A stretch of DNA of 64,000 nucleotides, from contig NW_013657632.1 in the NCBI RefSeq assembly GCF_000142905.1, forward strand, positions 1-64,000, given 5' to 3'. The position numbers and the translations under genes were made by a program. Source of the DNA: Thecamonas trahens ATCC 50062 (Eukaryota; Protista; Apusomonadida). Position 1 is the stretch's first letter; every line of letters begins with the position of its first letter. Shown here piece by piece: positions 18,801 to 49,051 of the stretch. The notes under the pieces are model-generated. The model had not been told where the DNA came from. It saw only the letters and a list, made by a program, of their open reading frames with translations, and did no database searches.

Positions 18801-19106
18801 ATGGACCGCCCCGCAGGTGCGCCACCGCGCGGCTCGTTCCAGCCGTCCGACTTTGAGCTGGGCCCATGCATCGGACGAGGCTCATTTGGACAGGTCCACA
18901 GAGCGTACGTACACAAGAGGGAGAATGTGTGATAGTGGGCTTGTATCTGTGTGTTTGGTATGTGCTTGTGTGTCTGTTGATGGCCGCGTGGCAGAGGTGC
19001 AACTCACGCCATTATTGTTGTCGCGCGCTGGGGGTGGGGGTGGGGGGAACTCGCCCTCGTCTCGCCTCGTATTCCATGTCGACTGCATATCATGCTGGTG
19101 GGCCAT

Positions 19107-19139
<33 letters not shown>

Positions 19140-20642
19140 ATGTGGTGGGGAGACAGCGTCTACACGCCGACCAACTTTGTGGTTGCCATCAAGACCATCG
19201 ATCTGGAAGACTCTGAGGACGAGATCAAAGACATCCAGCAAGAGATCCAGGTCATGGCGGCGTGCTCATCGGACCACATCACACAGTACTATGGGTCTGT
19301 GATGAACGGGCCGATGCTGTGGATTGTGATGGAGTACCTCGGCGGTGGGTCGGCGCTCGACTTGCTCCGGGCCGGACCGTTCCGCGAGGCGTACATTGCC
19401 ATCATCATGCGCGAGCTCCTCGAAGGTCTCACCTACTTGCACGAGCGCAACATGATCCACCGTGACATCAAGGCGGCCAACGTGCTTATCGGAGCCGACG
19501 GCGAGGTCAAGCTCGCCGACTTTGGTGTCTCGGGTATGCTCACCGACTACCAGACCAAGCGACGGACGTTTGTGGGCACGCCGTACTGGATGGCGCCCGA
19601 GGTCATTGTGCAGGCCGGATACTCGACGCCCGCAGACATCTGGTCGCTTGGCATCACCGCCATCGAGCTGGCCAAGGGCGTGCCGCCGCTCGGCGACGTC
19701 TCGCCCATGAAGGCTCTGTTCTTCATCCCCAAGAACGCCCCGCCCGTCCTCCGAGGCAAGTTCTCGACCAAGTTCAAGTCGTTTGTGGCTCAGTGCCTGG
19801 TCAAGGAGCCCGGCGCCCGCCCGACCGCCGCCGAGCTGCTCAACCACAAGTTTATCCGTTCCGCCCGCAAGATCTCCGCCATCCGTGACCTCATTAAGCG
19901 CTACGACCGCTACCGCATCTCAAACGGAAACAACGTGTGGCGCAAGGCCCGCTCCGACGGCGGTAAGTCCGGCTCGGCCGACCCGGCGTCGGGCTCCGCG
20001 CCCGCCGCCGGCGCACCCACTGTTGACGAGTGGGACTTTGAAACCTACCGCCCGCCGGCTAAGGAGGCCGCGAAGCCAGCCCCGTCGCCGGCCCGCGCTG
20101 CGCCTTCGCCGACCCGTGCCGCGCCGTCGCCGTCACCAAGTAAGCCGGCTTTGCCTGGCAAGCCGCGTGGCGGCAAGGTTGTTGCCCGCGCCCAGGGCAC
20201 ACTCTCTTCCTCATCTTCTTCATCTTCTTCCTCATCGTCCTCGTCGTCGGATGACGACGCTACCGAAACGGCCCTCGTCGACTCGGCACCCAAGTCCTCG
20301 CTTGTCGCCACCACTGTCGGCCCGGTACTCGCCGCCCTGCTGCGGCAGTACCCCGAGGCCGAGGACAAGATCCGCTCGCTGCAGACCGCGTTCGAGGCCC
20401 TTGACTCTGCCGCCGGGCCAGGCTCGGCGCTTGGAGAGGCCTTTGTCCGCTCGCTCATCGCCACCATCGAGAACCACCCCGAGCCGCGCATCTCCGGCCT
20501 CCTCCCGGCCTCGCGCACCCCGCCGCTCGCCGCCGACCCGGTCCTCCCGGCCTCAGTCGACGAGGGCCTCGCGCAGCGCTCGGTCGCCGCCAACTACCTC
20601 ATCAAGCGCTGGCGTATGTCCGGCTCGTCGCTTGCCCGCTGA
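18801..20642 (+). CDS. STE20-family GCK-III kinase (MST3/STK24/STK25-like; exons 18801-18904, 19157-20642)
   Basis: IGRGSFGQV in exon 1; [47 protein letters not shown]; DEWDF motif; C-terminal helical dimerisation-like segment. Confidence 0.92.
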
Positions 20643-21187: not shown

Positions 21188-22990
21188 TTACTCGGTCTCA
21201 AACTTGGGCCGGCCGGCCTCGACGTCGATGAGGCACTCCGAGTCGTCGAGAACGCGCGGGCCGTCGCCGACCGAGGTGTACAGCAGGTACTTGAGGCGGC
21301 CGGCGGCCGGGGTGACGTCGTCGACGGCGGCAATCAGCTCGGCCGGCGGTGGGTTGGCGGCGGCAAAGTCAAAGGCCTCAGCGTGCGGGAGGTACTCGGC
21401 GTTCGTCATCGAGTCCGGCGCGGGGAAGTAGTGGAGGACGGCCGAGAGGAAGGGGAGGACATGGTCGTCCTCGAGGTAGATGACAGCATTGGGGCCGGCG
21501 TCAAAGGTGTACGCGGCGGCGAGCGAGCCGACGGCCGTGTTGTACGCGTTGACAACCTTGACCACGTCACGCGAGACGTCGGTCATGTAGTGGATCGGCG
21601 GCTCGGTGGTGGCACAGGTGGCGTGGAAGTTGTCCGAGTCCTTCATGGTGAGGTCGGCAAAAGTGGCGTAGTCGCGCTCGAGGATGGCCTTCTCCATGGC
21701 GGCCATGCGGCCGGGCAGCATGGCGAGGCGGTCCGGAATGAGCGGCGACGTCGCCGCCGTCAGCTGCATGCCCTTGGACGACGACACGTGCTTCTTCTGG
21801 TCGTTGGCGACGAGGACAAGGACCCGCATCGACGGCCAGTGCGTGTGCGGCGCGACCTGGACCGCAATCGAGTCGGTCCCGTCAGCCCGCTCGCCCTCCA
21901 CCCACTTGACCCATCCGCCGTACATCGACCGCGACGCCGAGCCCGAGCCGCGGCGCGCAATGGCCGAGAGCTCCGTCTCCACGTTGAGCACCTGGGCGAG
22001 CGCGTACGTGAGGCACGCGTAGCCCGACGCCGACGATGCAAGCCCGGCCGCCGTAGGGAAGTTGTTCTCCGACACAATGAGCAGCTTGTACTTGGGCCAG
22101 TCGGCAGCCTTGATCACCACCCGCCCTGCGTTGTCGTACACGTCCGACGCATGCTCGCGCGCAAGCTGGATCACCGTCTGCACCCGCTTGTTGCCGGCAA
22201 TGTCCTCCTTGACCCCGTTGAGCCAGAGCTCGTCCTCGGCAAGATCAAGCGAGGCGAGAACCGAGGTCTTGGACGCCATGTCGTCCTGGTTCAGCGTTCC
22301 CGAGAGCGACGAGTTGAGCGGGAGCATGAGCCCCACGTCGCGCTTGCCCCAGTACTTGATCACCGCAATGTTGACCGGCGCCGTCGTCGTTGCCCACCGC
22401 GCCCGGCCCTCACCAGGCACCGGCGTCAGCTCCTTGGCAAAGCCGTTCACGCGCAGCCCGCGCGCCGGCGAGGCCATGCCGTAGCTAGAGTGGCCGTAGC
22501 CCGAGTGACCGTAGCCCGAGCCGTAGCCCGGCGCCGCAAACATGCCCATCGGGGCAAAGCTTGGCATAGGCCCAGCCTGCGCCTGATGGGCGGGAGCAAA
22601 GGCCTGCGGCGGGAACGGCGGGCATGGGCAATCACCACCGCCAGCAGCAGGAGCAGCAGCAGCAGGAGCCTGCGGCGGGAGCGGGCAGCAGCCCATGGCG
22701 GGGGCAAAGGGCATGAAGGCCGGCGGCGGCGGGAAGGCCGACGGTGGAAGCGGGGCTTGCGGGTACGGACTAGCACCAGTGCACGGGCCGTAGGCGCAGT
22801 GCATGGCTCCCGGGTAGCCCCAACCAGCAGCAGCAGCAGCAGGCTGTCCGTCGTCCGACGACGACGACGAGGAGGAGGAGTACGAGGAGGACGACGAGGC
22901 GGAGGAGGCGACGGTCGGGGCGGCATAGGCTCCGTACGGCGGGTAGCCGGCGTACCCGGCCACAGGGTAGTAGGGGTAGGGGTAGGACAT
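21188..22990 (-). CDS. MVD: Diphosphomevalonate decarboxylase with a long low-complexity N-terminal extension (true start uncertain)
   Basis: TAPVNIAVIKYWGKRD, LPLNSSLS, NNFPTAAGLASSASG, ARRGSGSASRS, DSDNFHA, AYTFDAGPNA. Confidence 0.92.
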   Translation of the reverse strand: MSYPYPYYPVAGYAGYPPYGAYAAPTVASSASSSSSYSSSSSSSSDDGQPAAAAAGWGYPGAMHCAYGPCTGASPYPQAPLPPSAFPPPPAFMPFAPAMGCCPLPPQAPAAAAPAAGGGDCPCPPFPPQAFAPAHQAQAGPMPSFAPMGMFAAPGYGSGYGHSGYGHSSYGMASPARGLRVNGFAKELTPVPGEGRARWATTTAPVNIAVIKYWGKRDVGLMLPLNSSLSGTLNQDDMASKTSVLASLDLAEDELWLNGVKEDIAGNKRVQTVIQLAREHASDVYDNAGRVVIKAADWPKYKLLIVSENNFPTAAGLASSASGYACLTYALAQVLNVETELSAIARRGSGSASRSMYGGWVKWVEGERADGTDSIAVQVAPHTHWPSMRVLVLVANDQKKHVSSSKGMQLTAATSPLIPDRLAMLPGRMAAMEKAILERDYATFADLTMKDSDNFHATCATTEPPIHYMTDVSRDVVKVVNAYNTAVGSLAAAYTFDAGPNAVIYLEDDHVLPFLSAVLHYFPAPDSMTNAEYLPHAEAFDFAAANPPPAELIAAVDDVTPAAGRLKYLLYTSVGDGPRVLDDSECLIDVEAGRPKFETE

Positions 22991-23327: not shown

Positions 23328-26300
23328 CTACGTTCTCCCGCCGGTAGTAGCGGCAAAGAGCTCGCGCTGGGAAAAGTGTTCCAGGGCGATGCCAGCGGGA
23401 GGCGTGGTCGGCGAGGCGGAGGCAGCCGAAGGAGGCTCGTCGGTTGATGCCACCGGCGCCGCGACAGGTGACGATGGCGGGCTCATCTCACTCCTGCTGT
23501 GGCTTGAGTCCGCCGGATGATCCACGCCGACACGCGCACCGGCGTCGAGTGCAGCGCGACCGTAGTCAAGGATCCAGGCACGCGATTCAGGCGAGGCATG
23601 AGTCCGGAGCGAGGAGATTCGATCGAGAGCTTCTACAAGAGGCGACGACAAGACGTGGGCATCGTGGTCCTGCCACAGCTTGTTACGTTCCATCTCGGCC
23701 TCGCTTGCCCGCCGCGAGACCGCCGCCAGCCGCTCCGCCACACTCGGCGCGAGTGCCTGCCACTCGCTTCGCAGCTGAGTTGCAGCCGGCGAGGTGAGCA
23801 CCTCGAGAAGAAGCTCGACCACGGTAAAGTCACCATGATCGAGGCTCGCCTGCGCGGTCGCCACCAGGCCGGCCAGCGCTTCGATGCGCTCACTCGAGGC
23901 GCCCGCGCCCAGCAGCCGCGTCGCCCATCGGCGGATTGCGTCGAGGACCCGAACCAGTGTCCGCGGCGCTTGTCCGCGCGAAACTGCCACCAGCGGTGTC
24001 TGCATCACAGCAAGCGCAACAAGGTCCCGCAGCTGCTCCGCCGTCGCCGCAGCATCCAGTGGCACGGCAGTTGGCAGCGGCCATGGGAGCTGATTGGCAC
24101 GCAGTTGCTGCCACCGCGCGAGCGAGTCGGCCACTGCCGCCTCGAGCACCGCGCCGTGGTAGTCAAGGTCTGTGATCGGCAGCACGTGGCGGATGAGATC
24201 GGAGACGAGCGCAAGGATCGCGCTTTCACCAAAGTCCTCAGTCATCGTCTCGGCCCAGGTGTGGATGAGATTCACAATGCGGATCCGGAACCCGCGGCGC
24301 TTGGCGGCGCTGAGCGCCACAACATCAGCGCTCGCGTCGGGCGCGCTCACCATCAGTGACACGGGGCCGGTGCAAAACTGGAGTAGCAAGTGCTGCAGGA
24401 TCGAGACCGCAGACTCTTGCTCGCGGAGCTGCAGCACAATGCCAACGTCAAAGATCCGCGCCACAAGGTCATCGTGTGCATCTTGCTCGCCCAGCGCTGC
24501 CGCAGACCCGGCATGCTCAAGCTCGGCTAGCAGCGGGCCAAACGCCCGCGGCAGCGGGAACCGGCCAAACTCGGCACGCCAAAGCGAGGTCTCCATCTCC
24601 AGCCGCTTGCGGTCAACCAGCACCACACGCACAAACGACCGCAGCTTGACTGAGTGCTCCGCTAGTACGTCCATTCGCGCCAGCATAGTCTCCAGTACTT
24701 CATATGCTCTCGCAAATTGCGGAAGCTCACGACGGAGCCCAGCAAAGTGGTCCTGCCGCTTGCTTGCTCCTCGAGCAAGGATCTCGACGGCCTGGGCATC
24801 ACTTTGCGCCGCCTGTGCCACTCCCGCTGCGTTCTGAGATGCCACACACTGCGCCGCAAGCTCATCGGTCAGCGACGTCACCGTCTGTTCCACAACAGCC
24901 AGCCCAAGCTCGCGGGTGGTCGCCCGAACAAGTCGCGCGCCGATCGCCAGCACCACAAGAAGGCCACCAAGCAGCGCCAAAGCGAGCCCGGCTTCCGACC
25001 GCACATAGTGCGAGACGTCCAGCGCAAGCTGGACAGTCACCACGGGCCGGACAAGCGCTCCAACTGCAGCTGAGCTTGAAGTCACCACGTCGGTGAGGAT
25101 GTCAAACAGATCGTCAGCTGCACTCGCGACGCCAACCCACTCCGTTCCGTCGATGGTGAGGCTGAGAACAGCGAGTGGCGAGTCGAGCAGCGCCAACGCT
25201 TCGCTCACCACCACCAGAGTCGCGTCCGAGAGCTCCCCCGCGGACGCGGTTGCTTTGAGCGTCGCCAGCGCCGACGCCAGCCCGCTCGCCGCATTGGGTG
25301 CAATTTCGTTGGCCGATGAAGGCACAAAGCCGAGACAGGCAAGCGCCAGGATGTAGAGGCCGACGCCTGCGGCGCTCCACACTGCAGTCATCCGCCGCAG
25401 CGCTTTCCAAAGCGGCACGCTGCTTACGTGCGGCAGTGCGACCGCGTGGCCCAGGTGGACGGCAAAGATGGCACGGACAGCGCGGGCGAGGAGCGGTGCC
25501 ATAACGATGCGGTGGGCCATAGCGGCGCGGCGCGCTGCTACGCCTGCTCGTGACGTGCTCGCCTCAGCCATCAGCTCGAGCACATTCGTTCCACCGGTCA
25601 CCACGTACGCCACGTCAAACGCCACGCCTACCAGACCCAGTACCTCCAGCACAAGCTGCGGGCCCACAAGCGAGCCGGACGAGACAGCAAGGCCAACATC
25701 GGCCCACAGAAGCAGCCAGGCGAGGATCTTGCCGACAGCGAGAACCCAGTGCAGCGCCCGGGTGCCTGACGTCGAGTTGGTCGCGACCAAGTTCCAAAAG
25801 TCGTCCACGACCAGAAGGTAGAGGAGCGCGACAACCGCAAGTCCAGCCAGCAGCATCGCTAGCGGACTCCCACCGCCGTTGCTGTGGGCTGCGAGCGGCG
25901 AGAGCAGGACTGGCGAAACGTCGAGACCCTGGCTGGTGGGCTTGTTCGTATCGTGGGCATCAGAGCCATCAGCATTCGACCCAACCGGCGGGTGAAGCGC
26001 AAGAAAGGCGTCAACCGCGCTCTCGTTCCAGTCCTGCTCAACTTCGGCTGATCCGTCGCGCGGAGGAGCGATTAGCTCGGCGGACGATCGCGGCGCCGAC
26101 GCCGGCTTGGGCGGTGGCGATGCCGAGGCTGGACCGACAGCCACCCGCGGAAGTGATCCAGGCTTGGGCGGCGAGCTCGTGTGTTCGTGGTGCCAGCGAT
26201 GGCCGGCGTGGATGCTTGCACGGCTTCCGCCTGCCGCCATCCCATCGGCTGCTGGAGCCGCAAGCGCCAGATCAAAGTTGGCGAGAACCTCAGCATAGCC

Positions 26301-26516
26301 TGCGCCGTCGAGGACTGACGCGATGCGCGTTTGCGGCGGAGAATGAACGCGTAGAGAAGAGGATGACGGCTCGACAGGCGCTCGGGCGTATGCTGGAAAT
26401 CGCTGGGCCTGGCGGGCTGACCGTGTGGCGGGGCGGGCCAGCAGCGGTGACGAGTGCGGGCCAAGCCGGGGGGTGGGGGTCCATTCGCCCGGCGCGAGGG
26501 ACGTGACCGAGTGCAT
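23328..26516 (-). CDS. Multi-pass membrane protein with ion-channel/voltage-sensor-like module, coiled coil and degenerate REM + CDC25 (RasGEF-like) domains
   Basis: About 6 hydrophobic segments (25860-24880) including an Arg-rich S4-like helix; RIRIVNLIHTWAETMTEDF (REM-like); GDFTVVELLLEVLTSPAATQLRSEWQAL (CDC25 NNF...RLKxTW-like). Confidence 0.65.
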   Translation of the reverse strand: MHSVTSLAPGEWTPTPRLGPHSSPLLARPATRSARQAQRFPAYARAPVEPSSSSLRVHSPPQTRIASVLDGAGYAEVLANFDLALAAPAADGMAAGGSRASIHAGHRWHHEHTSSPPKPGSLPRVAVGPASASPPPKPASAPRSSAELIAPPRDGSAEVEQDWNESAVDAFLALHPPVGSNADGSDAHDTNKPTSQGLDVSPVLLSPLAAHSNGGGSPLAMLLAGLAVVALLYLLVVDDFWNLVATNSTSGTRALHWVLAVGKILAWLLLWADVGLAVSSGSLVGPQLVLEVLGLVGVAFDVAYVVTGGTNVLELMAEASTSRAGVAARRAAMAHRIVMAPLLARAVRAIFAVHLGHAVALPHVSSVPLWKALRRMTAVWSAAGVGLYILALACLGFVPSSANEIAPNAASGLASALATLKATASAGELSDATLVVVSEALALLDSPLAVLSLTIDGTEWVGVASAADDLFDILTDVVTSSSAAVGALVRPVVTVQLALDVSHYVRSEAGLALALLGGLLVVLAIGARLVRATTRELGLAVVEQTVTSLTDELAAQCVASQNAAGVAQAAQSDAQAVEILARGASKRQDHFAGLRRELPQFARAYEVLETMLARMDVLAEHSVKLRSFVRVVLVDRKRLEMETSLWRAEFGRFPLPRAFGPLLAELEHAGSAAALGEQDAHDDLVARIFDVGIVLQLREQESAVSILQHLLLQFCTGPVSLMVSAPDASADVVALSAAKRRGFRIRIVNLIHTWAETMTEDFGESAILALVSDLIRHVLPITDLDYHGAVLEAAVADSLARWQQLRANQLPWPLPTAVPLDAAATAEQLRDLVALAVMQTPLVAVSRGQAPRTLVRVLDAIRRWATRLLGAGASSERIEALAGLVATAQASLDHGDFTVVELLLEVLTSPAATQLRSEWQALAPSVAERLAAVSRRASEAEMERNKLWQDHDAHVLSSPLVEALDRISSLRTHASPESRAWILDYGRAALDAGARVGVDHPADSSHSRSEMSPPSSPVAAPVASTDEPPSAASASPTTPPAGIALEHFSQRELFAATTGGRT

Positions 26517-26964
26517 GGCTGGTCCCGCCTGGTCTACCTTGCTGGTGGAGTGGTGCGAGCAGTGTGGTGTGGTGGGTGCAGGTGCCTGGCTCAGTAGCTC
26601 AGTAGCGCTGTGGGACGGAGTGGGGCACACGACAGCTGCCGTTGGGGAAAGATCACGGCAGACGGTGGTGAAGTTGCTGTGATGGTGTTTGATGAGGAGG
26701 ACTGGCTTGAGCCACCAAAACTACATTTCACAACCTTTTCCTAATATTTAACGCAACACAAAAAAAACGCGACCTTCTTGTGCACCTCCATGCGTGTACG
26801 GTACAACAGTGCCTGGCGAGGCATGGTGCTATCCACATGGCACTATCCCCCCACCTCGTGTCTATCCCTCTCCGATGTGCTCTTTCGGTGCCGCAGTCTG
26901 CCTCTCTATCCGAGCGCGCGTGCGTCGGAAAACGATCACACAGGTTGATCAAGCCAGCCATGCC

Positions 26965-27666
26965 CTACTCACGGTCACACGCACCAGACGAGCTCTCGGA
27001 CATAGGGATCGCACTACTCCCTTCAGAGCTCGTGCTGCTGCCCTCCGAGGTCGTCTGCTTCCGCGAGCTGCTGGTGTCGTTGGTGGCCATCGTCATGGGC
27101 ATGATGCCCGCGCTAGCAAGTTGCATCCTCAGCTCGCGAATGGTACTCTTCAGCTCGCGAATGGTGTCCGCAGCCTCCGTCGCCTGCTTCGCAATGGTGC
27201 TCGCCTGCTTCGCAATGGTGCTCTCCAAGTCCTTGATCTGCTTCGCCATCTCGTTCAGCAACACCTGGTTCGTCTCCGATTTGGATGCTGCCATGGCTCC
27301 TATCGAGTCAAGTATATCGCCACTTCCACCACCGCCGGCCCTCCGCCACTCGGCCCGTGCCACTCGCCGCAGCATGCGCTCCCCTACGCCGCGACGCGTC
27401 CGCCATCGCCGCCGTCGCCGCTCCAAGCCACGCCGCCGGCATCTGCATCCGCGTTGTTCGCCAGCCTTTCCCTCCTCGCCTTTCCCATCCAGCGCTGCCA
27501 GCTCTGCCTCCTCTCCCACGCCATCGGCCACCACCTCGAGCACTACCACCGCATCGTCGTCTTGCTTGCCGTCCTTGTTGGCCTGTCTCTCACAGCCATG
27601 GACATTGTTGTCGTCCGCCACCGCCTCCGACCTGTACCCCCGCCCCGGCCCTTCCACCGAGGTCAT
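26965..27666 (-). CDS. Orphan coiled-coil protein, copy 1 (real start may be MAASKSE at 27294)
   Basis: Open frame preserved in both copies; heptads STIAKQA/STIRELK; Ser-rich tail; possible acceptor (TTGAC...ATAG) just upstream of 27294. Confidence 0.5.
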   Translation of the reverse strand: MTSVEGPGRGYRSEAVADDNNVHGCERQANKDGKQDDDAVVVLEVVADGVGEEAELAALDGKGEEGKAGEQRGCRCRRRGLERRRRRWRTRRGVGERMLRRVARAEWRRAGGGGSGDILDSIGAMAASKSETNQVLLNEMAKQIKDLESTIAKQASTIAKQATEAADTIRELKSTIRELRMQLASAGIMPMTMATNDTSSSRKQTTSEGSSTSSEGSSAIPMSESSSGACDRE

Positions 27667-27707
27667 ACCCGCCCCCGCCAATAGAGTATGTAATGCGGAG
27701 AGGGGTG

Positions 27708-27739
<32 letters not shown>

Positions 27740-27804
27740 GGGTGACGCATAGTCGGTCAGGAACAAACGCCAGTATGCTGACCAGCACAGTGAAACAGGA
27801 TGGA

Positions 27805-27941
27805 GAGGGGATGGGGCTGGTGATGGAAGGGGCTGGTGGTGGCGATGGATGGGGGAGGGGCTGGTGGTGGTGTTCGATGGGGGAGGGGCTGGTGGTGGTG
27901 TTCGATGGGGGAGGGGCTGGTGATGGTGTTCGATGGGGAGG
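27805..27941. repeat. G-rich minisatellite (~28-bp unit GGGGGAGGGGCTGGTGGTGGTGTTCGAT, ~4 imperfect copies) at the duplication junction
   Basis: Unit visible directly; related sequence at 26679-26700 and 29085-29130. Confidence 0.8.
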
Positions 27942-28205
27942 CTGTGGCTTGAGCCACCAAAACAGCATTTCGCGACCTTTTCCTGGTGTTGGCGCAACGC
28001 GGAGGGAGGCGTGACCTTCTTGTGCAACTCCATGCATGTACGGTACAACAGTGCCTGGCGAGGCATGGTGCTATCCACATGGCACTGTCCCCCACCTCGT
28101 GTCTATCCCTCTCCGATGTGCTCTTTCGGTGCCGCAGTCTGCCTCTCCTTCCGAGCGCGCGTGCGTCGGAAAACGATCACACAGGTTGATCAAGCCAGCC
28201 ATGCC

Positions 28206-28937
28206 CTACTCACGGTCACACGCACCAGACGAGCTCTCGGACATAGGGATCGCACTACTCCCTTCAGAGCTCGTGCTGCTGCCCTCCGAGGTCGTCCGCT
28301 TCCGCGAGCTGCTGGTGTCGTTGGTGGCCATCGTCATGGGCATGATGCCCGCGCTAGCAAGTTGCACCGTCAGCTTGTGAATGGTGCTTTCCTGCTCGCG
28401 AATGATGTCCGCAGCCTCCGTCGCCTCCGTCGCCTGCTTCGCAATGGTGCTCGCCTGCTTCGCAATGGTGCTCGCCTGCTTCGCAATGGTGCTCTCCAAG
28501 GCATCGATCCGCTTAGTCAGCACCTTCAGCAACACCTGGTTCGTCTCCGATTTGGATGCTGCCATGGCTCCTATCGAGTCAAGTATATCGCCACTTCCAC
28601 CACCGCCGGCCCTCCGCCACTCGGCCCGTGCCACTCGCCGCAGCATGCGCTCCCCTACGCCGCGACGCGTCCGCCATCGCCGCCGTCGCCGCTCCAAGCC
28701 ACGCCGCCGGCATCTGCATCCGCGTTGTTCGCCAGCCTTTCCCTCCTCGCCTTTCCCATCCAGCGCTGCCAGCTCTGCCTCCTCTCCCACGCCATCGGCC
28801 ACCACCTCGAGCACTACCACCGCATCGTCGTCTTGCTTGCCGTCCTTGTTGGCATGTCTCTCACAGTCATGGACATTGTTGTCGTCCGCCACCGCCTCCG
28901 ACCTGTACCCCCGCCCCGGCCCTTCCACCGAGGTCAT
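28206..28937 (-). CDS. Orphan coiled-coil protein, copy 2 (real start may be 28565)
   Basis: Paralog of copy 1 with one extra 21-nt heptad and a 9-nt duplication; indels are multiples of three. Confidence 0.5.
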   Translation of the reverse strand: MTSVEGPGRGYRSEAVADDNNVHDCERHANKDGKQDDDAVVVLEVVADGVGEEAELAALDGKGEEGKAGEQRGCRCRRRGLERRRRRWRTRRGVGERMLRRVARAEWRRAGGGGSGDILDSIGAMAASKSETNQVLLKVLTKRIDALESTIAKQASTIAKQASTIAKQATEATEAADIIREQESTIHKLTVQLASAGIMPMTMATNDTSSSRKRTTSEGSSTSSEGSSAIPMSESSSGACDRE

Positions 28938-28979
28938 ACCCGCCCCCGCCAATAGAGTATGTAATGCAGGGCGGGTGAG

Positions 28980-29010
<31 letters not shown>

Positions 29011-29273
29011 TGTGGGTGGGTGGGTGAGGCGTGGTCGGTCAGGAACAAACGCCAGTATGCTGACCAGCACAGTGAAGCAGGATGGAGAGGGGAGGGGCTG
29101 GTGATGGTGATGGAACGGGGGAGGGGCTTGGCTGGCAGAGGGTTGGTTCTGTTTGATAAAGAGAACTAGGGAGAAAGAAAGAGAAAGAGAGAGAGGGAAG
29201 GGGGATAGAAAATAGGGAGGGTAAACTCGCTCATGCACGACTGCATCATCGTGCGACTGGGTCAGAATGAGCC

Positions 29274-32063
29274 TTAGGCCGAGTACGAGGCCGAGTACGA
29301 GGCTGAGCCGGAGCCCGAGTCGGAACCCGAGTCAGAGCCCGAGTTGGAGTCCATGCCATAGGCGCCCATGACAAAGTCCCAGCCAAAGCGGAGACCGGCG
29401 ACAAGGGCAAAGAAGTCTGCGACGGTGAGGCCATTCTCATCCACGTCAAACATCTCGGCAAACTCTTCAAGGCCGCCCTTGTCCATCTGCTTGATCTCCT
29501 TCTTGGTGAGGAAGTACTTGGCGATCTCCTTAACCTCGTCCTCGTCGAGGATGCCGTCTTCGTTGGCGTCAAAGGCGTCAAAGGCGTCGAGGAAGAGTGC
29601 GGCCTTGGGCAGAGCCAGGCCCGTCACATCCAGGTCCTCCTCGTCATCAAGGCCGGCCATAAAGGTGATGAACTCGGGCATGTCGAGCGTGCCGTCAGCG
29701 TCGACGTCAAACTTGTCGAATAGCTCGTTGACGTCGACGTCGTCGTCGTCAACAACGTCGTTCTCGTCGATGAACTCAAGCAGCTCTTCGCGCGAGACGC
29801 GGCCATCGCCGTCGGCGTCGGTGTCAAAGAACACGGCGGCGAGGAGGATGAGCTCAAAGTCGGTTTCGCGCAGCGTCTTGCCAGCCTTCTTCTTCTTCTT
29901 CTCCGACACCGAGTCGATGCTGGCCTTGACGTCAGCAAACGGGGCGGCCGACGCAGCCAACGAGTCGTCATCGGACGCATCCGACGAGACACTTGCCTTC
30001 TTGCCCTTGCCACCCTTCTTGCCGCCCTTCTTGCCCTTCTTGCCCTTCTTGCCCTTCTTGGCGTCTGCCGAGTCCTCCGACCCGGCCGAGGCAACAGCAG
30101 CGACCTTCTTGCCGCCCTTCTTGCCCTTCTTGCCCTTCTTGCCCTTCTTGGCGTCTGCCGAGTCCTCCGACCTGGCCGAGGCAACAGCAGCGGCCTTCTT
30201 GCCGCCCTTCTTGCCACCCTTCTTCTTGCCGCCCTTCTTGCCCTTCTTGGCGTCTGCCGAGTCCTCCGACCCGGCCGAGGCAACAGCAGCGACCTTCTTG
30301 CCGCCCTTCTTGCCGCCCTTCTTGCCCTTCTTGGCGTCTGCCGAGTCCTCCGACCTGGCCGAGGCAACAGCAGCGGCCTTCTTGCCGCCCTTCTTGCCAC
30401 CCTTCTTCTTGCCGCCCTTCTTGCCCTTCTTGGCGTCTGCCGAGTCCTCCGACCCGGCCGAGGCAACAGCAGCGGCCTTCTTGCCGCCCTTCTTGCCACC
30501 CTTCTTCTTGCCGCCCTTCTTGCCCTTGCCCTTGCTCTTACCCTTCTTGGCGTCAGCAGGTGCAATCGACTCAGCAACGTCCTCAGCATCCGAGGCCGAG
30601 AACCGAAGGCCGATGAGGATGAGAAGAAAGTCGACAAAGCGAAGAGCGTCGGCGTCAAACATCCAGCACGAGAACTCAAACATCGACTCAACGTCCTCAG
30701 CCGAGTTGAGATCGATCTTCTTCATCTCCTTGGGGGTAAAGAACAGGGAGAGCGCCTCCTTAAACTCGTCAAAATCGATGACCTTGTCGTCGTTGTTGTC
30801 AAAGACGGCAAGTACGTCGAGGATGAGGGCGGCCTTGGCGGTGTCAAGCTTCTTGGCCGACTTGGGAAAGTCGGACGCCACATCTGAGGTCACAAACCAC
30901 TCGACAAACTCACCCAGCGAGAGGTAGCCATCGTTGTCGAGGTCAAACTCGTCAAAGATCTCCTCGGCCCGGTCGTTGTCAATGTCAAACGCCGACTCGA
31001 GGTGCACAAACAGCTCGTCCTGCGAGATGCGGCCGTCCTCGTCGGTGTCTGCGGTAAAGAACGACGCAAATTGGGCAAGAATCGCAAGGTCGTCGACCTT
31101 GAGCTTCTTCGCCGCCTTTTTCTTGTCCTTGTCCGAAACAGTGTCCTTGAACGCCACCTTGGACGACTCGGACGACGCATCATTAGAGTACGACTCGCTG
31201 TATGATGCCGAGTACCCACCGCCCATCACACTGTGGTAGTTGGTCGACGAGACCAGGTTGCCCGCTGCCTCCTGCCCGAACCGGAAGTAGGTGTAGGCGA
31301 GGATAAAGGCCGGAAAGTCAAGGGTCACGTCGTCCGAGTCGAGCATGTCCTCGAAAAGCTCGTGCAGCTCTTCCTCGGTCACCGCCTTCTTGAGCTTCTT
31401 CGACGGCATCAGCGCGCGCATGGCGTCAAGAAACTCGGCCTCGTCGAGCGCGCCCGAGTCGTCGGCGTCAAACTGCTCGTACGCCCAGATGATCGCCTTC
31501 ATCTTCTTCTCATCGAGCGACGCGCCCTTGGGCACCAGCGCGTCCTCAAACTCCTCCCGCGACTGGATGAGGTTGAGGAACTCGCCCATGTCGAGCTTAC
31601 CGGACTCATCCTCATCAAACTCGAGCATCATGTCCGCTGCATCCTCCTCGTCTAGCCCCAGCGTCTCCGAAACCCACTGCTCCAGCTCGGACAGCTCGAT
31701 GAAGCCATCGCTGTTGGCGTCGGCCAGAAACAGGACGCCTGCCGAAAACAAAAGCCCGAGATCCTCCTCAGAGAGTAGCTATCGTCCCACAACCAGCCGG
31801 CAGCCGCCCCCACCGCCGTAGTCACCCATCGCAAAGATCGCGTCAGCCCAAGCCAATCCACCACAACATCAACAATGAGTACAAGCCAGTCCACCTCCCC
31901 CCCCCCCCCCCCCCCCCCAGCTGCCAGCTTCCAGCCGCTGCCCCAGCTAGCCCGCTTCTCCAGCTAGCCCGCTCCTCCTCCAGCTAGCCCCCCCCCCTCC
32001 CACACGCCACAAACAGTACGAAGGACATACCTTGGCAGCTTTGCTGATGTCCTTCTTTCCCAT
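29274..32063 (-). CDS. Multi-EF-hand calcium-binding protein: three calmodulin-like modules plus a Lys/Gly-rich repeat linker (exons 32063-32031, 31778-29274)
   Basis: EF loops DANSDGFIELSEL, DEDESGKLDMGEF, DADDSGALDEAEF, DTDEDGRISQDEL, DLDNDGYLSLGEF, DADGDGRVSREEL, DVDADGTLDMPEF, DANEDGILDEDEV; GTATGT...TAG intron in frame. Confidence 0.88.
29995..30550 (-). repeat. Coding tandem repeat (~90-100 bp unit, ~5-6 copies): KKGKKGGKK...AAAVASA(G/R)SEDSADA
   Basis: Repeated GCGTCTGCCGAGTCCTCCGACC blocks alternating with (TTCTTGCCC)n. Confidence 0.92.
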
Positions 32064-45769: not shown

Positions 45770-45935
45770 GGCCTGACAGTTGAAGCGCAGGAATATGGGA
45801 GGGGAGTGTGGTGTGGTGCTGTTGTTCCACGAGTTATGAAGATGCGGAGGTGAGGAGGTGTGGACTCGGAAGAGGAGTGGTAGTGGGGAGGGGGGGTGAT
45901 CGGGGTGGGGAGGGGGGACGAGGGGGGGGGGGGTC

Positions 45936-46599
45936 NNNNNNNNNNNNNNNNNNNNNNNNNNNNNNNNNNNNNNNNNNNNNNNNNNNNNNNNNNNNNNNNN
46001 NNNNNNNNNNNNNNNNNNNNNNNNNNNNNNNNNNNNNNNNNNNNNNNNNNNNNNNNNNNNNNNNNNNNNNNNNNNNNNNNNNNNNNNNNNNNNNNNNNNN
46101 NNNNNNNNNNNNNNNNNNNNNNNNNNNNNNNNNNNNNNNNNNNNNNNNNNNNNNNNNNNNNNNNNNNNNNNNNNNNNNNNNNNNNNNNNNNNNNNNNNNN
46201 NNNNNNNNNNNNNNNNNNNNNNNNNNNNNNNNNNNNNNNNNNNNNNNNNNNNNNNNNNNNNNNNNNNNNNNNNNNNNNNNNNNNNNNNNNNNNNNNNNNN
46301 NNNNNNNNNNNNNNNNNNNNNNNNNNNNNNNNNNNNNNNNNNNNNNNNNNNNNNNNNNNNNNNNNNNNNNNNNNNNNNNNNNNNNNNNNNNNNNNNNNNN
46401 NNNNNNNNNNNNNNNNNNNNNNNNNNNNNNNNNNNNNNNNNNNNNNNNNNNNNNNNNNNNNNNNNNNNNNNNNNNNNNNNNNNNNNNNNNNNNNNNNNNN
46501 NNNNNNNNNNNNNNNNNNNNNNNNNNNNNNNNNNNNNNNNNNNNNNNNNNNNNNNNNNNNNNNNNNNNNNNNNNNNNNNNNNNNNNNNNNNNNNNNNNN
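45936..46599. other. Assembly gap (N run) in a divergent intergenic region
   Basis: N bases flanked by G and C homopolymers. Confidence 0.99.
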
Positions 46600-46714
46600 T
46601 CCGCCCCCCCCCTCCCTCCCTCCCCCCCCCCCCCTCCCCCCCCTCCCCCCGCCCCTCTCCCGCCACCAGCACAGAACACATTCCACTCGCCGCCGACCCC
46701 CCCTCGTTGCGGCC

Positions 46715-48250
46715 ATGGGTATTGCAGGATTCGCGCGGTGGGTGCGGGAGACGTTCCCCAATGCCCATGGCGAGGTGGCGCAGGGCGCAGGGCTTGGGTA
46801 CACCCACGTCTATGTGGACATGAACTCACTGCTCCACCAAGCCGGGCGCAAGTCGGCCAAGATCAAGGACATGATCTTCAAGGTCTTCCGCGAGCTGGAC
46901 ATGCTGTTCAAGACCTTCCCGCCCTCCGCCATGGTCTATATCGCCTTTGATGGCCCGGCTCCGCTGGCCAAGCTCTCCACACAGCGCGCTCGCCGCGTCA
47001 AGGCCAAGGACAAGGAGGCGCGGAAGGCCGGCTGCGGCGGGGCGCATGGGCATGCGCCTGCCGCGTCGCAGTCTGCCAACGCCCCTGACTTTGTCTCGGG
47101 TGCTCGGGCAGGGAGCACCGCGTCGTCTGATCTGCCTGTTCCGCCGCCGCCAGAGGCTCTGCCCCTCCCCACGGGACTGCTCACTCCAGCCGCGTTGATG
47201 AAGGGCAGAAAGGGCCGTGGCAGGAACCGCAAGGGCGGCAAAGGCAAGCAGCCGCAGCCGCAGCCGCAGCCGCAGCCGCAGTCGCAGCCGCAGCCGCACC
47301 CACAGGTTGTCAACGCGGGGAAGAAGAAGAAGAAGAAGCGCAAGCCGGGCACCGACTCGGTCCTCTTCACGCCGGGTACCGATCTTATGTATACCCTTGC
47401 CGAGGCTGTGCTCTACTACGCATGCTCACGGCTCCAGGGTGACAGCAAGTACCGCGGGGTGCGGTTTGTTGTCTCGGGGCCCGATGTGCCCGGCGAGGGC
47501 GAGGTGAAGCTCGTGCGGCAGCTGGTGGCCGACGCCGCGCGTGGCGACGCCCGTGCCAAGTTTCTGGTTGTCGGCGGCGACGCCGACCTTATTCTGCTTA
47601 CCCTGGCGTGCGGCGTCCGCAACGTCCATCTCTTTGCCGAGGATTCGGGCGGAGGTGGCAAGAAGCGCAAAGGTCCGCGCCCGGCGGGCGTTCGCTACGA
47701 CATCGAGGCTATTGCCACCAAGCTCGTGTCACAGGCCGGTGGCCTCTCGCGCGAGCAGGTTGTGGCCGACTTTGTCACCCTCTCGCTCTTTATGGGCAAC
47801 GATTACTTGCCCAAGCTCCGCGGCGCTGCCATGGACTCACTGTGGAAGCAATACCGCGGCCTAGTCAACGGCACAGTATACAAGCCGCGCAAGCGCACGC
47901 AGCGCCGCCGCAGGGGCAAGGGCGGCGGCGCCAAGCCGCCACCGCGCGAGAAGCTCTGGCAGAACGGCTCGTTCCCCGGCATTGTCGACCTGACGTCACT
48001 TTCGTTTCATTGGAAAGCGCTGGTTGGCGTCCTCTCGCGGTGCGCTCGCAACGTACGGCACATCACCGAATCGCTCAACTCCGTGGCGGCGGCGCGGGCC
48101 GACGTTGCGGCAACCGGCGGAAACGATGACATCGACGATGACAACGGTGGCGAGGTCACCGAGACCGACGTCGAAACCGAGGACGAGATGGACACGACTG
48201 GTGTTAACAGCGACGGCGACGACTCGGAGTACGACGACGACGACGACAAC

Positions 48251-48285
<35 letters not shown>

Positions 48286-49051
48286 GGGTGGCCTTGCGGT
48301 CGACGCGTCGTCGCTTCCCAAGCTCAGTGGCGAGGCTGGACCGCTTGTGGCGTACTTCTCTGGTGTTCTGTGGACGCTGCAGACGTACCGGACCGGGATT
48401 GTGCCAGACTACGGGTTTGCCTACACTGCCAACCGGGCGCCCACGGTACTGAGTCTCGCCAACGTTCTGGTGACGCAGCCGGAGACACTGGCGACGTACG
48501 TGCGGGTGCCGACGTCAGCAACGCCCCCATTAGCTCCGGCAGCCTGTCTCATGGCGCTGCTGCCGTACGCGGCCCGCGATGTGCTACCTGGCCCGCTGCG
48601 GGCTCTCATGGAAGCTGACTCGCCGCTGGCCGACCTGTACGCGCGGGCGCCGCGTGGGGCCAAGCTCGACCTCGCTCGAGTGCTCGTCGAGCTCGCGGAG
48701 CTGGAGGCGACTTGCTACGCTCGCGACGCTCCTGCTGACTTTGCTGCACTTCGTCGCTTGTTTGTCTTTGGCGAGGTGACGGCGATTTGGCTGATGAAGA
48801 CCGAGCCACCGACGCCGACCTCAGTCTCGTCGGTCTACTTCCAGGCGCCGCCGCTTCCGCCTGGCCATCGGCCACTGCGCAAGCCTGCACGTCTTCAGAT
48901 GGCACCGCTTGGCAGCGATGACGGGATCGGTGTGACGGTGGCGGCGCGGAACGGGCGTGGTGGCGGTGGCGGGCGTGGCGGCGGCGGTGGCGGTAGGCGC
49001 GGAGGCGGTGGGCGCGGTGGCGGTCGCGGCAGACGCCGCAAGCAGCAGTAG
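46715..49051 (+). CDS. Divergent XRN-family 5'-3' exoribonuclease
   Basis: MGIAGFARW, YVDMNSLLH, AFDGPAPLAK...QRARR, TPGT, PGEGEVK, DADL, GNDYLP, YFSGVLWTLQTY; PQ repeat, poly-Asp and RGG tail. Confidence 0.88.

Follow-up and report, generated by a model that had tools for sequence, protein, structure and literature searches.

The window analysed here is a stretch of 64,000 nucleotides (positions 1 to 64,000 of contig NW_013657632.1, assembly GCF_000142905.1) of the apusomonad Thecamonas trahens ATCC 50062. On its minus strand lies one unbroken open reading frame (ORF) of 1100 codons, 23328..26630 in the ORF list of the window, whose product we call the focal protein; residue numbers given below for this protein are those of the whole 1100-codon frame. 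We propose, with a probability of about 0.7, that it is a fast-evolving and strongly diverged member of a family in which a membrane module of the voltage-sensor domain (VSD) type is joined through a helical linker to the REM and CDC25 domains of a Ras guanine nucleotide exchange factor (RasGEF), and that it now serves as a non-catalytic or atypical partner. Membership of this family of VSD-module RasGEFs is very likely given the alignments described below, and the evidence leans, by a modest degree, towards a protein that is impaired both catalytically and electrically. Rather than being a working voltage-to-Ras switch, it would probably have the role of a regulator or scaffold. The family is expanded in this genome; judged against its paralogs there, of which at least seven are better preserved, it is the most degenerate representative and not a unique invention.

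A single conserved gene

An exhaustive phmmer search of 1.84 billion protein representatives returned exactly one relative, P0001 (E 5e-118), which is a single ORF of 1072 amino acids on a 3.55-kb metagenome contig of an ENA assembly. A scan of metagenome contigs with conserved peptides revealed no relatives beyond P0001, and a word-index protein search with the focal protein was blank, being swamped by low-complexity words. The two proteins are colinear over residues ~195-1035 at 34-38% identity. The membrane part is 32% identical and the C-terminal part 43%, and the C-terminal half, being the best conserved, is therefore under selection. Shared features include the S1 Asp, the S2 Lys together with an acidic residue, the S3 Glu and Asp, and the DVS motif that precedes S6, all of which have counterparts in the wider family described below, as well as four basic positions in S4 and extended stretches of the C-terminal half. 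The S1-S2 loop of both proteins also carries an N-x-S/T sequon for N-glycosylation, as would suit a loop on the extracellular side.

The original prediction had treated the locus as one gene, and had quoted transmembrane, Arg-rich and WKALRRM motifs that are all present at the places it gave. The frame is continuous both at the focal locus and in P0001, and on this ground a reading as two genes was rejected. Both halves are conserved in one frame in P0001; the locus is therefore neither two genes nor a spurious ORF, and is one real conserved gene. The quoted sequence features are not due to chance, P0001 being colinear and conserving the residues and blocks listed above.

VSD-module genes in the same genome

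Comparison of Pfam models with the genome gives 68 RasGEF (PF00617, the CDC25 domain) and 60 RasGEF_N (PF00618, the REM domain) matches, with at least 65 canonical RasGEF domains; the focal locus is not among these matches. A weak Ion_trans (PF00520) match on contig 61 (model positions 9-111, the voltage-sensor part) falls within a 1209-codon frame shared with RasGEF_N and RasGEF. The product of this ORF (c61; G000:C61, 1184 amino acids; RasGEF 1.8e-38, RasGEF_N 2.7e-8, Ion_trans 3.5e-5) has a membrane layout like that of the focal protein, with an Asp pair in S1, a Lys and F-x-x-E in S2, an Asp in S3 and a long arginine ladder in S4, followed by S5, a loop of ~100 residues and a V-S-H motif before S6. 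Searches with this part of c61, and then with an eight-sequence profile, identified nine genomic loci with a clearly VSD-like S1-S4 and an S5-loop-S6 module (Table 1).

At least six of the module loci are fused to canonical RasGEF_N and RasGEF domains. The paralog frames at C18:213-219 kb and C11:452-457 kb encode 1386 and 1420 amino acids, respectively. RasGEF matches of the paralogs range from E 1e-38 to 1e-53 and RasGEF_N is matched too, with weak matches to Ion_trans that end, throughout the family, near position 124 of 241. The S4 of canonical members has a basic residue at every third position, 6-9 in all, and F-x-x-E is present as well. A family profile built without the focal protein matches only voltage-sensor domains in the PDB (Hv1 1.4e-4, Cav1.3 repeat IV 1.5e-3, Cav1.1 and Shaker ~0.02); these matches span S1-S4, and in them F290/E293 and D316 of Shaker line up with the F-x-x-E and the S3 Asp of the family, respectively.

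The module is common to the RasGEF-type genes, two cyclase-like paralogs and P0004, a metagenomic protein annotated with PF26726 ('Helical_RasGEFs') and then PF00211. The annotation of P0004, its match to the family profile around S6 (98%) and the ESM neighbours of the focal membrane half (see below) indicate that PF26726 is very probably this membrane module. A word-index search with c61 and the paralog profile matched only P0002, P0003 and P0004. P0002 is an ortholog of c61 at 63% identity, as P0001 is of the focal protein at 38%, and P0001 and P0002 come from two ENA assemblies (ERZ27290035, ERZ17175005). P0003 (ENA metagenome, 568 amino acids) is a fragment with 100% identity to part of the C61 sensor-RasGEF, and the same or a very close species is therefore present in a public environmental assembly.

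The two cyclase-tailed members are found at G000:C53 (L035:1578-4532:-) and G000:C18:443500-449000 (L034:1450-3966:+). Their cyclase-like tails are below detection by Pfam Guanylate_cyc, and a G-F-G stretch follows S6. The tail of the C53 member (L035) matches solved adenylyl cyclases at 3.6e-4 and is 36% identical to the PF00211 region of P0004. The first metal-binding position looks altered in L034 and L035, and both may be pseudo-cyclases. At the C43 locus (G000:C43:295000-300500; L030:711-3179:+) the frame stops soon after S6, with no recognisable output domain.

The membrane half

The query in the hhalign comparisons was a two-sequence profile of the focal protein and P0001. Its membrane half aligns with six paralog modules in 285 columns that run colinearly from S1 to beyond S6 (hhalign probability 96.1%, E 2.9e-9), and also with the eight-sequence alignment (96.7%, E 3.8e-10); the two matches comprise 285-287 columns. 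Control profiles, one reversed and eight with shuffled columns, scored 13-19 (E 0.13-0.72), compared with 72-78 for the real alignments. With a score of 0.88 and 173 features in common, the ESM Atlas clusters nearest to the membrane half have PF26726 in 86-96% of their members and Ion_trans in 24%. The S6 region gives the sole pairwise BLASTP match of the focal protein to c61 (E 0.009). By these profile comparisons the membrane half is homologous to the S1-S4 plus S5-loop-S6 module, and the similarity of its S1-S4 to known VSDs appears to hold indirectly, via the profile of the paralog module. The proposal that this is a membrane region of the voltage-sensor type, akin to that of channel-cyclases, is borne out by profile homology to a module that is also cyclase-fused in this genome and in P0004. 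In a tree of the membrane modules, the focal protein and P0001 form a clade of their own on a stem of 1.56 changes per site, outside all other members.

Kyte-Doolittle windows place hydrophobic segments at residues ~257-281, 293-315, 323-345, 414-437 and 546-570, and an amphipathic Arg-rich helix at residues 361-390 stands in addition to these five. The predicted topology has the N-terminus inside, six transmembrane (TM) segments and the C-terminus inside, with the S1-S2 and S5-S6 loops outside and the GEF-like half inside. VVDDFW lies in S1, WADV in S2, LEV...FDV in S3 and WKALRRM before S5, while LDVSHYVRSEAGL lies before S6 and RELGLAVVEQ after it; the DVS-x-Y-V-R motif that precedes S6 is common to the family. 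Acidic residues are D275/D276 in S1, D311 in S2, and E329 and D339 in S3. Among these, D311 is the equivalent of the S2 Glu countercharge and E329 that of the S3 Asp, to which D339 and D275/D276 are added.

The basic residues of S4 are R361, R367, R368, R374, R383 and R386. When the alignment of the family to Shaker is carried over to the focal protein, a register that passes through two alignments, Shaker R1 corresponds to R374 (Arg in P0001), R2 to M377 (His in P0001), R3 to L380 (Met in P0001), R4 to R383 (Arg in P0001) and K5 to R386 (Arg in P0001). Two more S4 positions of the family are without a basic residue in the focal protein, namely V364 and M371. The S4 ladder thus aligned appears interrupted, with the equivalents of R1, R4 and K5 retained and those of R2 and R3 gone. 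The plug Phe of S2 (in F-x-x-E) is Leu in both the focal protein and P0001. The D-A-x-x-L-V-x-x-P-I-E motif that follows S6 in L029, L034, L035 and P0004 is absent from the focal protein, which has R-A-T-T-R-E-L-G-L-A-V-V-E-Q in its place. No G[YF]G of a K+ selectivity signature occurs anywhere in the focal protein or P0001, and a reading as a pore-forming channel was rejected for want of a selectivity motif (T-x-G-Y/F-G) between S5 and S6.

The C-terminal half

The C-terminal half of the query profile aligns with the REM and CDC25 domains of the six module-RasGEF paralogs (hhalign probability 94.2%, E 1.1e-7) and, over 265 columns, with 14 canonical REM-CDC25 units (95.9%, E 5.1e-9). Reversed and shuffled controls gave E 0.17-0.88, and cross-controls between the two halves were negative. 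The REM piece alone is matched at 92.7% (E 4.2e-7, score 51.5; shuffles score 10-16, E 0.18-0.83), and it retains the R, W and F that are conserved in RasGEF_N. We assign the CDC25 domain because its match is colinear with that of REM, because there is agreement at the level of motifs, and because the ESM feature neighbours of the C-terminal half are all RasGEF, albeit at a weak score of 0.80. The tail is, on these alignments, homologous to REM and, probably, to a CDC25 core. The original prediction of a REM followed by a short, degenerate CDC25 domain is upheld by the match to REM-CDC25 units and by the 12 of 38 conserved positions that are kept (see below), and the limits that it set, 25870-24880 for the TM region and 24450-23560 for REM/CDC25, agree with the domain limits found here to within a few codons.

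The helical linker gives no profile match to the paralogs with hhalign; conservation across the protein peaks within it, in a block around VDRKRLEMET...GRFP. Strong purifying selection acts on linker, REM and CDC25 core alike.

Degeneration of the tail was scored at 38 columns, those at least 80% conserved among the 14 canonical REM-CDC25 units of this genome. The focal protein keeps 12 of the 38 and P0001 keeps 10, compared with 28-37 in the canonical units. Both retain the A-x-Q-L start of CDC25 and the central helices up to the conserved Trp, and both have an L-I/V-D-Y-x-R stretch that resembles the L-I/V-N-F-x-K with which the second hairpin helix begins in canonical domains. The N-x-N-x-x-M motif is changed to D-x-T-x-x-E, and the first CDC25 helix region is ~10 residues short. 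The P-Y-x-G...D-L...E-G-N motif, which we take to be the first helix of the catalytic hairpin, bearing the Leu and Glu by which the nucleotide site is opened in the SOS-Ras structure, is unrecognisable; E, A, D, S and S stand at its P, Y, G, D and N positions in a low-confidence part of the alignment. The domain ends near residue 1035, without the last ~70 residues and the terminal S-L-x-x-E-P-R that they include. A missing C-terminal exon was rejected: the 338 bases that separate the locus from the next gene contain no candidate for one, and P0001 ends likewise. The focal protein shows no class III cyclase similarity in Pfam or NCBIfam, and with no cyclase match in Pfam a reading as a cyclase was also rejected.

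Table 1. Features of the focal locus (window coordinates) and genomic loci carrying the VSD-like module, by output domain.
Feature	Location	Strand	Extent and basis
Probable complete single-exon coding sequence	23328..26516	-	1062 codons from the ATG at 26516; first ATG, colinear P0001
N-terminal region, low-complexity, Pro/Ser/Ala-rich, predicted cytoplasmic	25881..26516	-	ORF residues 39-250; sequence
VSD-like four-helix part, S1-S4	25461..25862	-	residues 257-390; hydropathy, hhalign with controls, family profile against PDB VSDs
S5	25320..25391	-	residues 414-437; hydropathy, alignments
S5-S6 loop, ~105 residues, presumed extracellular	24996..25319	-	conserved block around LSLTIDGTEWVG; hydropathy, alignments
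S6	24921..24995	-	residues 546-570; BLASTP to c61, alignments
Long helical linker	24453..24920	-	residues 571-726; P0001 alignment, helices in low-confidence models
REM-like domain	24078..24452	-	residues ~727-851; hhalign, kept R/W/F, weak structural matches
CDC25-like domain, degenerate, C-terminally shortened	23526..24077	-	residues ~852-1035; combined hhalign, ESM neighbours
C-terminal tail, low-complexity, plus stop codon	23328..23525	-	sequence
Module with REM and/or CDC25 output	C61, C18 (213-219 kb), C11, C32, C37, C7
Module with degenerate class III cyclase-like tail	C18 (443-449 kb), C53
Module with no output domain; SH3 domain ahead of module	C43

Interpretation and alternatives

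In the family as a whole, a conformational change of the membrane module would be transmitted through S6 and the long helical linker to the cytoplasmic output domain. The canonical paralogs are likely to be sensor-regulated exchange factors, parallel to the fusions of module and cyclase, and the output domain may have been swapped in evolution between class III cyclase and REM-CDC25. Voltage is most likely the ancestral input, by analogy with the ciliate and apicomplexan channel-cyclases and the voltage-sensing phosphatases, and the full S4 ladder and F-x-x-E of the canonical members point the same way.

The focal protein would retain the scaffold (countercharges, the R1, R4 and K5 equivalents, linker and REM) and not the moving charges or the exchange machinery. 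We consider a non-catalytic role most likely because, with the R2 and R3 equivalents missing and an eroded exchange machinery, the protein is still under strong purifying selection in its linker, REM and CDC25 core. The protein may pair through its helical linker with catalytic paralogs, or it may bind a small GTPase or another protein without nucleotide exchange, in the manner of the Cdc25-like domains of the NSP/BCAR3 adaptors. In NSP adaptors (BCAR3, SH2D3C) these domains are pseudo-GEFs that have lost the exchange machinery and serve as binding modules; being soluble SH2 adaptors of animals, the NSP proteins are related to the focal protein only by fold family. The choice initially offered, between a direct coupler of membrane potential to a small GTPase and a pseudo-GEF scaffold, can be narrowed: the loss of R2/R3 and of the hairpin motif makes a direct coupler less likely, and a pseudo-GEF scaffold fits better. 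A more far-reaching combination is speculative and unlikely, namely that the family is a new class of voltage-regulated enzymes in which membrane potential directly gates Ras/Rap activation through VSD, S6-linker and REM-CDC25. The focal protein would then be a dedicated subunit without catalysis of its own, tuning or localising the catalytic paralogs in a pair of sensor and pseudo-enzyme or, in a stronger version, would itself couple voltage to a small GTPase by way of an unconventional interface.

Several observations weigh against our reading of the focal protein as a diverged, non-catalytic family member. The protein itself has no match in Pfam, either whole or as separate halves, even at E 10, none in NCBIfam, and no usable PDB sequence match with the single sequence or with two-sequence profiles. 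Family HMMER profiles miss it in genome-wide searches and reach ~10-15 bits in a direct test, and the CDC25 piece alone is matched weakly (17%, E 0.0015, score 30.5; shuffles score 11-15). The register of S4 on Shaker is transitive, from focal protein to family to Shaker, and may be one turn off; five or six basic residues are still present in S4. Lost signature residues do not prove lost activity, and the protein is clearly under purifying selection, so that it could be an unusual sensor or GEF that is still active. The AlphaFold2 models, made from two-row alignments, are unreliable (pLDDT, the per-residue model confidence, of 39 and 47 for the membrane and C-terminal halves, respectively), and fold searches with both (PDB Foldseek, ESM Atlas, VIA wide) gave no significant match. 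The membrane model finds scattered six-TM channels only, at non-significant levels. With the C-terminal model, SOS1/SOS2, Rgl2 and RasGRP4 are enriched among the top Foldseek rows (E >=0.14, TM-score ~0.18, non-significant), and RasGRP2, Epac2 and Rlf are matched weakly in structure at their REM domains; the C-terminal profile compared with PDB sequences gives Rgl2 at E 0.048. As far as such models can be relied upon, the fold-search results do not contradict the sequence evidence.

The losses in S4 and in the catalytic hairpin also bear on whether the focal protein could itself be a functional voltage-to-GTPase coupler, in which S4 would move on R367/R368, R374, R383 and R386 and the tail would be a divergent active GEF, perhaps for a non-Ras small GTPase with an altered interface. 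The acidic countercharges of S1-S3 and several S4 basic residues are kept in both the focal protein and P0001, the C-terminal half is the better conserved one (43% against 32%) and so under selection, and L-I/V-D-Y-x-R resembles its canonical counterpart. However, the Shaker R2/R3 equivalents are hydrophobic in the focal protein and His and Met in P0001, the plug aromatic is Leu, and the catalytic hairpin motif and last ~70 domain residues are absent, and we regard such a coupler as unlikely. A ligand- or partner-gated receptor, with a VSD-like bundle that is structural only, as in TRP channels, and with the ~105-residue S5-S6 loop as the sensor signalling through the linker, would be in keeping with the degenerate S4, the lack of a pore signature, and a loop that is long, has conserved blocks across the family and shows predicted strands (in a low-confidence model). 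The loop is nevertheless without similarity to known ligand-binding domains in Pfam, PDB sequence and fold searches, and canonical members still have S4 with its complete arginine ladder, along with the charge-transfer motif F-x-x-E; this explanation appears decidedly improbable. It is very improbable indeed that the resemblances to VSD and REM/CDC25 are artefacts of composition and helix pattern in an unrelated, lineage-specific membrane protein. That single-sequence and HMM-to-sequence searches are all negative or marginal, and that the alignment comprises two sequences only, would suit such an artefact, but two independent halves match the expected halves in the same order, colinearly and with E 1e-7 to 1e-10 where controls give E >0.1, and the independent ESM feature neighbours indicate the same two families.

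Relation to known systems

Voltage sensors that drive an enzyme instead of a pore are known from only a few proteins, among them the voltage-sensing phosphatases and the ciliate and apicomplexan channel-cyclases. A voltage-sensor module wired to a Ras exchange factor would tie membrane potential directly to small-GTPase signalling. The genome offers a natural series of canonical sensor-RasGEFs, sensor-(pseudo)cyclases, an output-less module and the focal protein, eroded at both ends, a series in which it can be asked what in the sensor, and what in the GEF, is required. Taken alone, the focal protein is the least suitable member to show coupling; it is useful as a 'dead' comparator or as a possible regulatory partner.

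The closest comparison is with the canonical VSD-module RasGEF paralogs (C61, C18:213-219 kb and C11), which have the same order as the focal protein from the low-complexity N-terminus through CDC25. These paralogs match Pfam RasGEF/RasGEF_N, and weakly Ion_trans, whereas the focal protein matches none. The focal protein differs from them in being without the R2/R3 equivalents, in having Leu for Phe, and in being without L-V-x-x-P-I-E, the hairpin motif and the C-terminal helices. The REM-CDC25 units of SOS, RasGRP, RalGDS and Epac give no significant match to the focal protein, in which 26 of the 38 conserved positions are changed or missing.

Ion-channel/adenylyl-cyclase fusions (ACalpha) have been reported from Paramecium, Tetrahymena and Plasmodium (Weber et al. 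2004, as cited in PMC12223298). VSD-cyclase proteins of Phytophthora have been described, and VSD-cyclase fusions were thought to be restricted to stramenopiles and alveolates (PMC12223298). As described, these proteins have a membrane module of like kind ahead of a cytoplasmic signalling enzyme; the focal protein differs in that its output is REM/CDC25-like and not a class III cyclase. It is also without the G-F-G stretch after S6 that is found in the cyclase-type relatives. Ci-VSP, a voltage-sensing phosphatase (reviewed in PMC10651576), is alike in that its cytoplasmic enzyme is governed, via a linker, by a VSD that lacks a conducting pore. Voltage-sensing phosphatases consist of S1-S4 and a PTEN-like phosphatase only, whereas the focal protein has two more TM helices, a large loop, a GEF-like tail and a degenerate S4.

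No publication on the fusion of a voltage-sensor or Ion_trans module with a RasGEF came up in full-text literature searches. The architecture was originally put forward as undescribed, and to this extent the claim stands; it is not unique, as at least six genes of this genome have the canonical module with RasGEF_N and RasGEF, and PF26726 seems to cover the module. Pfam 38 lists this family as 'Helical_RasGEFs', a name which shows that curators of the database were aware of the module in RasGEFs. The architecture is a variant, so far undescribed, of a known theme, that of a voltage sensor coupled to an enzyme.

Gene model and genomic neighbourhood

The genome (28.7 Mb) is GC-rich, and its long ORFs are mostly uninterrupted. 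The open frame of the focal locus begins at a GTG and reaches 26630, upstream of the ATG at 26516. This ATG is the likely start, giving a product of 1062 residues, since it is the first ATG and lies directly downstream of an AT-rich intergenic stretch in surroundings of ~65% GC. The Pro/Ser/Ala-rich N-terminal region is essentially unconserved in P0001.

Downstream of the focal gene, on the same strand, lies a gene for mevalonate diphosphate decarboxylase (21188-22990, minus strand; MDD_C 2.5e-63, MVD-like_N 6e-56), with an N-terminal extension of ~200 low-complexity residues rich in Tyr, Pro, Ala and Ser. Upstream, again on the same strand, is a small gene in tandem duplicate (window positions 26768-27815 and 28010-29097). 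The tandem unit is ~1.05-1.25 kb, with segments that are 91-97% identical at a spacing of ~1240-1280. Each copy contains a small minus-strand ORF (e.g. 26965-27750) that encodes a coiled-coil-like protein with internal 21-nt repeats and without a Pfam match. The flanking genes encode an 825-residue protein with many EF-hand pairs (29274-31751, minus strand) and a protein kinase of 516 residues (19092-20642, plus strand). Further along the window, an XRN-type 5'-3' exonuclease ORF (45896-49051, plus strand; XRN_N 7e-42, XRN_M 4e-10) covers its only low-GC stretch, with 47% GC at 46-48 kb compared with ~65% elsewhere.

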